From: Octopus sinensis
Lineage: Eukaryota
Reading direction: 5' to 3'
DNA: 64,000 nt
NCBI RefSeq assembly: GCF_006345805.1
Contig: NC_043002.1
Span: 55,428,001 to 55,492,000 of the forward strand
Positions within the stretch are counted from its first letter, which is position 1, and every line of letters starts with the position of its first letter. The notes beneath the pieces are model-generated. The model ran no database searches. It had not been told where the DNA came from and worked only from the letters and a program-made list of their open reading frames with translations. The translations under genes and the position numbers were made by a program. Positions 48,166 through 51,627 of the stretch are shown piece after piece.

Positions 48166-48190
48166 ATGTTCAGCTCATTGTTTACTACAC
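48166..48190 (+). CDS. putative LIF/IL-6-like cytokine, copy D, exon 1 (MFSSLFTT+C, phase 1)
   Basis: AAAATG context. C|GTGAAA donor is weak but is the only donor in phase with exon 2 (C+AC = His). Confidence 0.65.
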
Positions 48191-48305
48191 GTGAAAAACT
48201 AACAGCGACTTATCGAGTTATTTCTTTTTAATAATAACAATTCCTTCAATGTCTCCCTTTCCTTCTAAATGTTCCTTAATGGTATTTTTTTCCATTTTCC
48301 CGTAG

Positions 48306-48463
48306 ACTGGCAATATGTATTGGTCCTATGTATCTCAGTCTGGACTTCATTCATCCAAGGAGCATCGATAAAACCTACAGCGATACCAATAAATAACATA
48401 AAAGCTCCGCTGGAGGCGGCTAGCAGGGCCTCAATCGCCGTGAACACTACTTTGCATTCTTTT
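48306..48463 (+). CDS. copy D exon 2: signal peptide and helix A
   Basis: TTTCCCGTAG acceptor, TTT|GTAAGT donor. Encodes WQYVLVLCISVWTSFIQG|ASIKPTAIPINNIKAPLEAASRASIAVNTTLHSF. Confidence 0.85.
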
Positions 48464-49509
48464 GTAAGTTTACATTTATTCATTCATATATTATTGTTAT
48501 TATTATTGTTATTCTTGTTGTTGCTGTTGTTGTTGTTGTTGTTGTTGTTGTTGTCCTTCTTCTTCTTCTTCTTCTTCTTCTTCTTCTTCTTCTTATTATT
48601 ATTATTATTATTATTATTATTATTATTATTATTATTATTATTATTATTATTATTATTATCATCATCATTGAGTGTTAGAGCAGTGCATGCCATCAACGTA
48701 ACACTGGGGTAACATAAACGAAGCCCAGTATACGTATCATGACTACCCGACTGATAAGTGTTCACCAGGCACATGCATCACAACCATATGTGCGTGACAT
48801 GGTGATCTCATAACAAGATAAACAGCGCATGAACTTACAGGTGGGGCCCAGTTAGAATTTTCTTCCGGTCAAGTAACCCATCCTGCTCAAAAGGTCCCTG
48901 AATAAGGATTGTTTAAAGATGTTCTACGAACCACCCCTGTTTCCAAAGGTGAATTATCCAAACCTCTAAAAATTCCTTTCAACACACGGATATGATGCTC
49001 CCCCATTACTTCTGTTTCTAATCAGAGATGCACATATCGTCAGCCATTAACGGACATGCTCAACTGGTTAAGATCAAACAACTGACAAGCAAATCTGTGA
49101 TATTGAGCAGAATATTTGCTGTAGCCCATCTTTATTATTATTATTATTATTATTATTATTATTATTATTATTATTATTATTATTATTATTGTTGTTGTTG
49201 TTGTTGTTATTATTAGCATTATTAATGTTATTATAATTATAATTACTACTACTACTACTACACTACTACAACAACAACAACTACGACTACTACTACTACT
49301 ATATATTGTTATTAATTATTTTATTTTATTATTATTATCACTTCTTGTTATGCCACTCCAATAATATATTACCTATCATATAAATAATGTTCTCGTAAAT
49401 ATCAATATTTATAACGACTAGTTCCATGGAAACGGACTTCTACTCCGTTGTTTTCTAATCCTATCTGTCCAAATCTCAGGCTCATAATATGTCACGTGTT
49501 TTTCTACAG

Positions 49510-49644
49510 TGCCACAACACTCCAATGGCTTCTGCGGTAAGCTGTCCTCACTTTATTCACATGCTACTCAACCGGACGGAACTTACATTCCCTCAGCTCT
49601 ACATTCAACACAATATCACCATCGCGCAGACAGACTTAGTCAAG
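49510..49644 (+). CDS. copy D exon 3: AB loop
   Basis: TTTTCTACAG acceptor, AAG|GTATGG donor. Encodes CHNTPMASAVSCPHFIHMLLNRTELTFPQLYIQHNITIAQTDLVK. Confidence 0.8.
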
Positions 49645-49776
49645 GTATGGACATATTATCAAACACCTTTTCTTGAAATATTTATACACTTTCTGTCTAG
49701 ACTCGATTCTATATTTTATAAGAAATCTCAATCATTGTCGAATAAAATTCAAGCTTCTCACAATTCTTTATTACAG

Positions 49777-50007
49777 ATTGCTCTATCCAATATGTCTGCA
49801 ACCCTCAGTCAATATGTTACTGTGTTGAAGAATCAGAGGAAAAGAGAATATGATAGGCTGTGTGCCCCTGCCAAACGTATACAGACAGAGTGTCATTATC
49901 CCGCTGCCTGTTCTAAACTCACTCCCACATCTGATGCCATATTTTATTGTTATTTAAAACAAACGCTTTATTACTTGGTTGATACGATACTTTTCCTGGA
50001 TTTACCG
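49777..50007 (+). CDS. copy D exon 4: helices B and C
   Basis: TTCTTTATTACAG acceptor, CCG|GTAAGA donor. Encodes IALSNMSATLSQYVTVLKNQRKRE...CSKLTPTSDAIFYCYLKQTLYYLVDTILFLDLP. Confidence 0.8.
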
Positions 50008-50872
50008 GTAAGAATTATTTTCCTCATACTTCTCCCTGGATGATTATTTTAAATATTACTCGTAGAATTCATCTGGGAAGCTATGGTTAGTTTATTTAAA
50101 GAAACTGTTGTCAAAGATTAATGGTTCCATTCTTTAGATTGCTTTGGAGAAATATAGAATCATTTCAAAGCGTTCTTGCCTTCCATAGTTACCATACGAT
50201 TACAACTTAAATCTCTTCAGGTTTTTTTCTTGCTTAAGATTTCTATTGTAAAGTGTTACGTGCAGAGGATAATCAGGTTACCCCATCCGCTATTTCCTCA
50301 ATTATATGGCGCTTTTAAGTTGACAACAATGCGTAGAAATGTAACCAGCATAGAATGTCTAATTATTTCAAGTAAATACTACAATTAGAATAATTTTGAA
50401 CCGTTCAAATTTAACAACGTAACTTAGTCTATCAAAATGTTTTCTATCAGATATACGTCTGCATCCATGAGTTTCTATATTTCTTAGTAGCATATATCGT
50501 ATACTACGTGTGTGTATATAGTTAGTATTAGGAAATGTGATTCTTAATCTGTGTAAATGTCTCTGTCGCATTGAATCTTGGGGTAAAGGGTTTCATTTGC
50601 CATGATTGTATCTCATCTGCGTGAGATTTCACATGAATTTATATATATATATATATATGTATATATATATATATATATATATATATATATATATATATAT
50701 ATATATATATATATATATATATATATATATATATATATATATATATAATAAGGGTAATTAAATTCTATAATGGTTTTTTAAAAAAAGTCCACAATTATTT
50801 ACTGGTAGAATTCGGTATGTAAATATAGCCGATTACCGGCAGGAACTTCTGTAAAGTTCAGTATATATATTG

Positions 50873-51067
50873 TATATAAGAAAAGGGACAGGCAACAGGT
50901 TGCTTGACCGCATACCGAAAAAAGTAGAAATAGCAGTCAAAATGCTTATTTCTAATTTCCACAAATTTCCCATTTGTGGAAATTAGAAATAAGCATTTTT
51001 GACTGCTATTTCTACCTTTTTCGGTATGCGGTCAAGCAACCTGTTGCCTGTCCCTTTTTCTTATATA
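50873..51067. repeat. near-perfect fold-back (about 94-bp arms, 5-nt loop TTCCC) in intron 4 of D; mirror ~61890-62085 in E
   Basis: Direct reverse-complement match. Homologous to bases 1-60 of the window. Inserted in (TA)n. Confidence 0.9.
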
Positions 51068-51468
51068 TATATATATATATATATATATATATATATATAT
51101 ATATATATATATATATATATATATATATATATATATATGTATGTATATATATATATATATATATATATATATATATATATATATATATATGTAGATATAT
51201 ATATATCCATACGTACAAATATATATATACACACACACATGTGTGTGTATGTGTGCGTTCGTGCGTGTGTATGTGTATGTGTATCATAACGTGATACTTT
51301 GAGGACTAAGAACTTTCTTGGGAGGTCGAACATATTAAGCGTACGAGTATGTTTATAAGTGTGTGCGCGCGTGTGTGTGTATATGTGTGTGAGTCTTCGT
51401 GTGTGTCTGTGTATTAATATCAATTAATGTTTATCCCTAATTTACAATATTCTTTTCATATATTTCAG

Positions 51469-51627
51469 ATATTTTCAAACATCAAACAAAATGTCGAAGT
51501 GGATGACAGTCTTTTGCTACCGGACAATGTGCCAATAATCCAGCAGCGATGGTTTACCATAATTACACTCCATACACTTCATGAAAATATAAACCACATT
51601 CAAAATACTCTACAATCCTTTATGTAA
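51469..51627 (+). CDS. copy D exon 5: CD loop and helix D
   Basis: TTTTCATATATTTCAG acceptor, phase 0. Encodes IFSNIKQNVEVDDSLLLPDNVPIIQQRWFTIITLHTLHENINHIQNTLQSFM*. Open in C, D and E. Confidence 0.82.
   Translation: MFSNIKQNVEVDDSLLLPDNVPIIQQRWFTIITLHTLHENINHIQNTLQSFM

Follow-up and report, generated by a model that had tools for sequence, protein, structure and literature searches.

An arrayed octopus gene encoding a candidate long-chain class I helical cytokine

The DNA analysed here (64,000 nucleotides (nt) of an octopus genome, contig NC_043002.1, positions 55,428,001 to 55,492,000; hereafter the window, by whose positions features are located) raises the question of what is encoded by an interrupted gene on its + strand, which begins at position 46829 or 48166, depending on the first exon used, and ends at 51627. 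A first-pass annotation had proposed that a hidden five-exon gene at this place specifies a LIF/IL-6-like four-helix cytokine. The gene, referred to as copy D, is one of five related copies in the window. The results presented below make it probable that it belongs to a coleoid family of secreted, N-glycosylated and disulfide-stabilised class I cytokines of ∼205 amino acids (aa), which would signal through a gp130/Domeless-type receptor and the JAK/STAT pathway.

Five segments of copy D, each flanked by GT..AG splice sites and polypyrimidine tracts, join in frame into a spliced length of 708 nt, that is, 235 aa and a stop codon (Table 1). The intron phases are 1-0-0-0 with either of the two candidate first exons, and splice sites, frame and phases were all verified as the first-pass annotation had read them. 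The hydrophobic N-terminus of the protein, with its small-residue −3/−1 site (IQG|A), the four N-x-S/T sequons (NTT, NRT, NIT and NMS) and the six Cys residues downstream of the predicted cleavage site were likewise all found. Exon 3 specifies an A-B loop with a Cys-x10-Cys pair, a mini-helix and a conserved FPxL motif, and the B-C loop specified by exon 4 contains the motif REYxxLCAPAxxxxxxCHYPxAC...YC. When the coding sequence of the O. sinensis gene LOC118763924 was rebuilt from its locus, it proved to consist of exons of 10/158/135/231/159 nt, and exons 2–5 of copy D have the same sizes and positions as the last four exons of this RefSeq model; because of this equality in size, exons 2–5 can be taken as exactly right. 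Copy D is a real five-exon octopus gene and one unit of a partly decayed array. It can be called hidden for this genome only: the databases already contain such a gene, its orthologues in O. sinensis, O. bimaculoides and O. vulgaris being listed there as uncharacterized.

A protein search showed the closest proteins to be all from Octopus and all without a functional name. They include LOC118763923 (isoform X2) and LOC118763924 of O. sinensis, both of 230 aa and 88–90% identical to the copy D protein, LOC128248021 and LOC128248030 of O. bimaculoides, both annotated as ‘uncharacterized protein’, and a set of hypothetical proteins of O. vulgaris. All of these are direct orthologues or array paralogues that are 83–91% identical to copy D and share its exon 2–5 sizes, and none of the annotated Octopus relatives bears a functional name or a Pfam domain. 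Four of the O. vulgaris ‘hypothetical predicted proteins’ are mis-modelled, being either chimeric across array units or retaining the 132-nt in-frame intron 3. A profile search with HMMER (which uses no word index) over 1.84 billion representative proteins gave 18 matches, and two further searches added members; all those with a named source came from Octopus species, Argonauta hians or Acanthosepion pharaonis and were labelled ‘uncharacterized’, the remaining matches being derived from ENA and Logan contigs. No earlier description of the gene family or of its LOC identifiers was found in the literature searched, a library that does not cover all journals.

The members form at least six paralogue groups (LOC118763923/4, LOC115213514, LOC115212847/LOC118763732, LOC106873702, LOC106871653 and LOC118763701), which are 25–40% identical to the copy D protein. 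Six Cys residues are kept family-wide, arranged as a C-x7-10-C pair just after helix A plus four around the B-C loop, together with the FPxL motif and the extended motif REYxxLCAPAxxxxxxCHYPxACSxxTxxxDAIFYCYLR; most of the groups also keep a sequon where helix B begins. At an overall identity of ∼30%, columns E125, C130, A133, C140, P143, C146 and C159 are near-invariant. The strongest evidence of constraint is this retention of the Cys framework and the motif across paralogues that are so diverged. The gene structure is also maintained: LOC115212847 (P0010), which lies ∼50 Mb away on the same chromosome and is 30% identical, has five exons, a 4-nt first coding exon and phases 1-0-0-0, its intron positions being those of copy D.

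A Logan contig from SRR6517992 aligned to the A. pharaonis genome in three blocks with 99–100% identity, with introns 3 and 4 spliced out, which documents splicing directly at the transcript level in a decapodiform member. Exon 3 of this cuttlefish transcript begins at a Cys codon, and that of P0010 begins at the first Cys codon, so that the exon 3 start at the first Cys noted in the first-pass annotation extends beyond copy D. Positions 1–121 of the cuttlefish contig (L006) contain in-frame stops and find no match within the 11.5 kb upstream in the A. pharaonis locus; these 121 nt at its 5′-end are possibly an alternative 5′ exon, the result of a chimeric contig, or part of a truncated isoform. 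The exon encoding helix A has so far been recovered for no decapodiform member. A separate set of sequences was noted in the ENA assembly ERZ21867824 (L004; P0018 and P0030–P0037), where open reading frames (ORFs) corresponding to exon 4, ∼40% identical to the target, occur as many slightly different copies with prokaryote-style gene calls; these point to another expanded array, probably of a cephalopod.

The fold was predicted with AlphaFold2, run without templates on the O. sinensis orthologue P0004, which is 90% identical to the copy D protein and has all its family-invariant residues. With an alignment of three near-identical sequences the prediction was uninformative (predicted local distance difference test (pLDDT) 37.7). 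With a 25-sequence alignment spanning the paralogue groups, which includes many fragments, the mean pLDDT rose to 83.7 and the predicted template modelling (TM) score, pTM, was 0.79; the five models obtained had pLDDT values of 80–84, and 111 residues reached at least 90. The model comprises a signal-peptide helix, helix A (residues 32–59), a 37-residue A-B loop that includes a mini-helix (68–78), helix B (97–129), a B-C segment of ∼20 residues with a short helix, helix C (153–176), a C-D loop of 24 residues and helix D (201–229). The four main helices are thus 28, 33, 24 and 29 residues long; in the model, helices of 24–33 residues with two long crossovers and a shorter B-C link make up the signature of a long-chain cytokine with up-up-down-down topology. 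The possibility that AlphaFold had simply drawn a helical, Cys-containing protein with a shallow alignment into a familiar bundle would be in keeping with the small number of sequences, many of them fragmentary, and with the failure of the three-sequence run. It is nevertheless very unlikely, given the agreement and high confidence of the five models, the absence of templates, and the helix and loop lengths, which independently fit long A-B and C-D crossovers and a shorter B-C loop. The competing explanations weighed here and below are not mutually exclusive, either with the cytokine reading or with one another.

When the model was compared with the PDB using Foldseek, the best match was human G-CSF, in its receptor complex (1cd9_A; target-normalised TM 0.78, root-mean-square deviation 3.3 Å, probability 1.00) and as a crystal structure (1rhg_B; TM 0.81), with a range of 0.75–0.81 for G-CSF. 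It was followed by CLCF1, LIF, prolactin, IL-27p28, growth hormone (GH), IL-12p35, placental lactogen, CNTF, IL-11 and IL-6. Nearly all of the top 40 matches were long-chain class I cytokines, and unrelated bundles appeared only lower down, at probabilities <0.25. Since Foldseek aligns structures in the order of their sequences, a TM as high as 0.78 to G-CSF can arise only if the helices run in the same order and direction. The same model compared with predicted viral structures gave only low-probability, low-TM noise, with the exception of one herpesvirus protein, and for this reason the cytokine matches in the PDB are not a generic effect of helical proteins. The exception was Bov2.b3 of bovine gammaherpesvirus 6 (173 aa; probability 0.87, target-normalised TM 0.56), which may itself be a captured host helical cytokine. 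Judging from the predicted structures, the family very probably has the class I long-chain helical cytokine fold. The assignment made in the first-pass annotation is therefore supported by predicted structure and gene architecture, not by the motifs it had cited; as to its LIF/IL-6-like label, both proteins are among the matches, but the closest one is G-CSF.

In the model the octopus protein would share with the G-CSF/IL-6 group the long-chain four-helix bundle, an A-B loop that contains a mini-helix, and two Cys that closely follow helix A; it differs in having four extra Cys around the B-C loop and only ∼9–10% identity in structural alignments. With LIF, CNTF, CLCF1, IL-11 and IL-27p28 it shares the fold (CLCF1, 8d7h_D; LIF, 1pvh_B, with a target-normalised TM of 0.71; probabilities 0.87–1.00 for the group), while their disulfide patterns are unlike those of the octopus family. 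Prolactin, GH, placental lactogen, CNTF and CLCF1 are also among the Foldseek matches, and no result obtained here points specifically to immunity, so that a hormone or growth factor of the GH, prolactin, leptin or CNTF type has to be considered, acting through the same receptor class in a neurotrophic, metabolic or reproductive role rather than an immune one. This explanation seems rather unlikely: GH and prolactin reached TM values of 0.43–0.54, clearly below those of G-CSF, LIF and IL-27 (0.6–0.8), and core hormones are seldom encoded by multi-copy arrays that include pseudogenes.

The gene architecture bears on whether the resemblance reflects ancestry. Mapped onto the predicted structure, the first intron would interrupt the signal peptide. 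The second would come immediately ahead of the first Cys, with three residues of helix A still to follow; helix B would be split by the third intron after its first five residues, and the fourth would lie two residues beyond helix C. The human IL6 gene has coding exons of 19/191/114/147/168 nt, giving phases 1-0-0-0, with introns where helix A ends (immediately ahead of the first Cys), where helix B starts and where helix C ends; the LIF, CNTF and OSM genes have 2–3 exons, unlike the five-exon octopus gene. The phase pattern that the first-pass annotation had likened to that of IL6 was found in copy D, LOC118763924 and P0010. In having one phase-1 intron within the signal peptide, followed by three introns of phase 0 that interrupt the domain, the octopus gene fits the published layout of the IL-6 gene (bioRxiv 10.64898/2026.04.02.716188), and the first intron of IL-11, which lies 7 bp after the ATG, is also in phase 1 (PMC3271213). 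Five exons, a very small first coding exon and phases 1-0-0-0 are common to the octopus gene and to genes of the IL-6/G-CSF/IL-11 type, which speaks for descent from a shared ancestor rather than for convergence, and it is mainly because of this exon-phase layout that common descent is preferred. The fuller proposition, that the family is a true if extremely diverged homologue of those vertebrate genes and also the endogenous ligand set of the mollusc gp130/Domeless-like receptor, is put forward tentatively, its chances being judged a little short of even.

The opposite view is that these are secreted helical proteins that acquired a cytokine-like bundle by convergence, or have it only in prediction, and that serve as a pheromone or other chemical signal, a salivary or venom component, an antimicrobial, a carrier or a matrix protein, with no class I receptor signalling. 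It accords with the lineage restriction of the family and the lack of any sequence link to a cytokine, with a four-Cys B-C loop motif that is unique to the family, and with the fast turnover of tandem arrays and a fairly high dN/dS (0.54), which are typical too of cephalopod-specific secreted effectors. Against it stand structural neighbours that are almost exclusively long-chain class I cytokines and not generic four-helix bundles, the helix connectivity demanded by the match to G-CSF, and five exons separated by a phase-1 intron and then three phase-0 introns at helix boundaries, an arrangement that matches genes of the IL-6/G-CSF/IL-11 type and is not expected from convergence. We regard this view as unlikely.

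The cytokine reading must also be weighed against a body of results that count against it, most of them from sequence comparison. No cytokine family was detected when the target and 17 family members were searched against Pfam-A with hmmscan at E ≤ 10, and the PDB sequences, whether queried with one protein or with the profile of the family, likewise yielded nothing relevant and no cytokine (matches to MOB/phocein and prenyltransferase proteins, at E-values of 0.2 or more, were rejected as chance). The human LIF, G-CSF and IL-6 sequences used for comparison agreed with PDB chains at every aligned residue. Smith-Waterman alignment of the mature octopus protein to these gave z scores of −0.15, −0.48 and 0.02, respectively, relative to 1000 shuffles (empirical P = 0.52 for LIF); the scores of the family hidden Markov model (HMM) lay within those of 500 shuffles of each (P = 0.24, 0.09 and 0.08), and hhalign gave P = 0.35, 0.14 and 0.56. 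The PROSITE signature PS00254, C-x(9)-C-x(6)-G-L-x(2)-[FY]-x(3)-L, was absent from 11 of 11 members while being matched by the human IL-6 and G-CSF controls; at the analogous site the octopus protein has C-x10-C-x6-L-L. The form of the IL-6 signature given in PMC3271213 is consistent with this pattern. The family is thus placed, by sequence, outside the sequence-defined IL-6/G-CSF/MGF (PF00489, PF16647, PS00254) and LIF/OSM (PF01291) families. The motif matches to LIF and IL-6 that had been picked out by eye do exist as strings, but at a level expected by chance in the Smith-Waterman, HMM and hhalign tests; the strings paired with LIF occupy corresponding parts of the two structures, namely where helix A begins, where the A-B loop ends and where helix C begins. 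The accompanying remark that sequence searches miss this family is supported, the Pfam, PDB sequence, pairwise, profile and PROSITE searches all being negative. Sequence methods fail completely here, while family-wide alignment and structure prediction succeed.

On the same side of the balance are the arrangement of the disulfides, with four Cys around the B-C loop, which is unlike that of any vertebrate cytokine known to us; the modest Foldseek E-values, 0.03 or worse; the fact that the fold was predicted for a 90%-identical orthologue and not for the copy D protein itself; and the disrupted state of copies A, B and C among the five. Within the subfamily, moreover, constraint is weak. Comparison of copy D with LOC118763924, a small sample, gave 0.047 non-synonymous (dN) and 0.087 synonymous (dS) substitutions per site (omega = 0.54), suggestive of weak purifying selection, which is common among cytokines. 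Over 525 exon nt, copies D and E show 3 substitutions, every one synonymous, and no indels, compared with 43 substitutions in 3432 non-coding nt plus 119 gap columns; this excess of exon conservation was not significant (P = 0.27). Copy D could on these grounds be a silent or non-functional duplicate of recent origin that is decaying into a pseudogene, its open frame a leftover: its neighbours A, B and C are frame-disrupted, the divergence between D and E stays at <1.3% even outside coding sequence, too little for selection to be needed to explain their open frames, and the exact protein is absent from the public annotations searched. Yet copy D retains all its splice sites, every family-invariant residue and the two possible first exons undamaged, the few exon differences from copy E are synonymous and the indels are confined to the flanking non-coding DNA, and the orthologous O. 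sinensis genes have RefSeq models; a silent copy is accordingly considered improbable.

Were the family to act as the cytokine reading supposes, the protein would be secreted after cleavage of its signal peptide (…IQG|AS…) and glycosylated, and the faces of the bundle would bind and oligomerise a gp130/Domeless-type receptor via its cytokine-binding module of two fibronectin type III (FnIII) domains. Engagement of the receptor would then activate JAK/STAT, by analogy with Upd in Drosophila and with IL-6 and G-CSF in vertebrates. The paralogue groups, and the tandem and inverted arrays with decaying copies, would reflect the fast birth-and-death evolution that is usual for immune or reproductive ligands. 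Receptor signalling by the family is the part of this scheme towards which we lean only slightly. In terms of classification, the predicted fold suggests a new cephalopod-restricted family within the known class I superfamily, and it has not been filed as IL-6, LIF or G-CSF.

The start of the coding region deserves separate comment. Two first exons are available to copy D (Table 1), both ending in phase 1 inside the signal peptide. The distal one has a strong donor (ACT|gtaagt, leaving a phase-1 intron); it is colinear with exon 1 of O. sinensis LOC118763924 (positions 10001–10010 of locus L001), the RefSeq orthologues start with MNNY from ATGAATAACT|gtaagt, and the same 40-nt sequence recurs at position 19617, upstream of copy B. 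The proximal one, which the first-pass annotation had adopted, has a weak donor (CAC|gtgaaa). Copies B and C, and O. sinensis too, contain it at 100% identity, and an exact look-up of constructed sequences found its MFSSLFTTH start to be used by no protein in a collection of 15 billion sequences; neither the 235-aa nor the 230-aa form of the copy D protein was present in that collection. As the true exon 1 the proximal exon is probably wrong, since RefSeq orthologues use the distal type, although the phase inferred from it is unchanged; it is possibly an alternative proximal first exon. It lies, with a TATA-like element ∼55 nt upstream of its ATG, in a block that is near-invariant in window copies B, C and D, in both O. 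sinensis copies and in two O. vulgaris copies, the units as a whole being 92–95% identical. The block may serve in proximal regulation, or as an alternative promoter together with its first exon.

Table 1. Exons of copy D, the conserved block upstream of its second exon, and the other gene copies in the window
Feature	Positions	Strand	Description
Copy D, probable true coding exon 1	46829..46838	+	ATGAATAACT; 10 nt, M-N-N and first base of Y; exact pattern match
Copy D, exon 1 of the first-pass annotation	48166..48190	+	25 nt, MFSSLFTT and one base; donor CAC|gtgaaa, weak
Conserved block	48080..48305	+	∼230 nt directly upstream of exon 2; holds exon 48166..48190 and TATA-like TTTATATTTA
Copy D, exon 2	48306..48463	+	158 nt; remainder of signal peptide (cleavage predicted to follow IQG), then helix A with the NTT sequon
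Copy D, exon 3	49510..49644	+	135 nt; begins at first mature Cys; A-B crossover loop and start of helix B
Copy D, exon 4	49777..50007	+	231 nt; helix B (conserved sequon NMS), four-Cys B-C loop, helix C
Copy D, exon 5	51469..51627	+	159 nt; C-D crossover loop, helix D, stop codon
Copy A	6233..8412	+	Truncated pseudogene; only 3′ end of exon 2 left; exons 3–5 with multiple indels
Copy B	19617..25935	+	Probable pseudogene; undamaged in exon 2 and in the two possible first exons; several indels of 1–3 nt in exons 3–5
Copy C	33457..36937	+	Probable pseudogene; exons 2 and 5 open; exon 3 with three 1-nt indels (one insertion, two deletions); exon 4 with a 2-nt deletion
Copy E	61327..63484	-	Inverted duplicate; exons 3 (63484-63350), 4 (63217-62987) and 5 (61485-61327) intact; exons 1-2 beyond window end

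The five copies (A–E) were located by tblastn of the copy D protein against the 64,000-nt window. Only D is both complete and intact; A, B and C are frame-disrupted, and E, which is inverted and cut by the end of the window, encodes in its exons 3–5 the same amino acids as copy D. Copy B extends from 19617/22480 to 25935. The units of the array are 92–95% identical in nucleotide sequence, introns included, and D and E are 97% identical when gaps are counted. Many of the indels in A–C sit in short homopolymers, so that assembly error could conceivably be their source, but each of the three copies carries several. The window as a whole is 96–97.5% identical in nucleotide sequence to O. vulgaris chromosome OX597819.1 and 86–96% identical to O. 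sinensis CM016864.1. These identities confirm an octopus origin and place the DNA in the vulgaris group, though it is distinct from the corresponding region of that O. vulgaris assembly. The O. sinensis locus L001 (CM016864.1:55531845-55555431) contains two family genes placed head to head, ∼3.5 kb apart, one on the - strand from 6539 to ∼3424 and the other on the + strand at 10001–13587. This locus lies wholly within the span of another annotated - strand gene (with a 274-aa product), and the array may there be nested in an intron.

Several features of the introns of copy D were also recorded. Intron 3 (49645-49776, 132 nt) is in frame and free of stops, so that exons 3 and 4 form part of a single ORF of 184 aa (49489-50043); intron 3 of copy E is likewise open (ORF 62951-63505). 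The retained intron is translated in the O. vulgaris models P0005 and P0002, and its 44 residues are absent from the RefSeq O. sinensis proteins and from all diverged paralogues. Much of intron 2 consists of very long microsatellites, (GTT)n, (CTT)n and (ATT)n at 48490-48660 and then (ATT)n, (GTT)n and (CTA)n at 49130-49300. Intron 4 of copies D (50862-51079) and E (61879-62096) contains a near-perfect hairpin of ∼218 bp that is 93% self-complementary, with long (TA)n tracts on both sides; it looks like a miniature inverted-repeat transposable element (MITE) or a foldback insertion, and alignments to copies A–C break across it. Downstream of the copy D stop codon ATTTA motifs were not enriched (4 found, 5.3 expected), and no AATAAA occurs within 1.5 kb of it.

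Elsewhere in the window, the region 54000-56000 (+) is CA-rich, G-poor and strand-asymmetric (GC skew −0.48), with units of ∼300 bp, and it has a G-rich mirror at 58000-60000 (skew +0.54). Together with copies D and E, these mirrored regions point to a large tail-to-tail palindrome centred near 56–57 kb. Long ORFs at 1964-6218 and 20732-21538, whose translations, read by eye, resemble an endonuclease, a reverse transcriptase and a C-terminal piece of ORF2, look like a non-LTR (lacking long terminal repeats) retrotransposon of the long interspersed nuclear element (LINE) type; they lie in the only GC-rich part of the window (GC 0.51–0.55) and are interrupted by repeats of the (TCTA/TATC)n type.

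As to what such a family would mean for molluscs, Drosophila Upd1-3 are, to our knowledge, the only protostome helical cytokines that are well established as ligands acting on JAK/STAT through a receptor of the gp130 kind. Like the octopus family, as predicted here, they are secreted, glycosylated, lineage-restricted and undetectable by sequence from vertebrate cytokines (see PMC13203501 for context), and they may by analogy provide a functional model for its possible role. The Upd proteins are larger, and the profile search over 1.84 billion proteins included no arthropod protein among its matches and revealed no sequence link to Upd. IL-6R/Domeless-like (gp130-type) receptors, JAK and STAT have been reported in Mollusca, while IL-6-like ligands were not found in most invertebrates according to a 2026 survey (PMC13203501), and the activators of crustacean Domeless are described as largely unknown (PMC9195186). 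On the strength of its predicted fold, the family described here offers a concrete and testable candidate for the missing helical cytokine ligand of molluscs. If the family is both a true homologue of the vertebrate genes and the ligand set of the mollusc receptor, long-chain helical cytokine genes of this type would predate the protostome-deuterostome split, and these would be the first JAK/STAT ligands identified in lophotrochozoans. The family therefore bears on whether class I helical cytokines originated once, before the bilaterians split, or several times. In vertebrates, gp130-family cytokines are used by the nervous system, in regeneration and in cellular immunity. Cephalopods have complex nervous systems, regeneration and cellular immunity, and the family would be an entry point for work on wound healing, haemocytes and neurobiology in the octopus.

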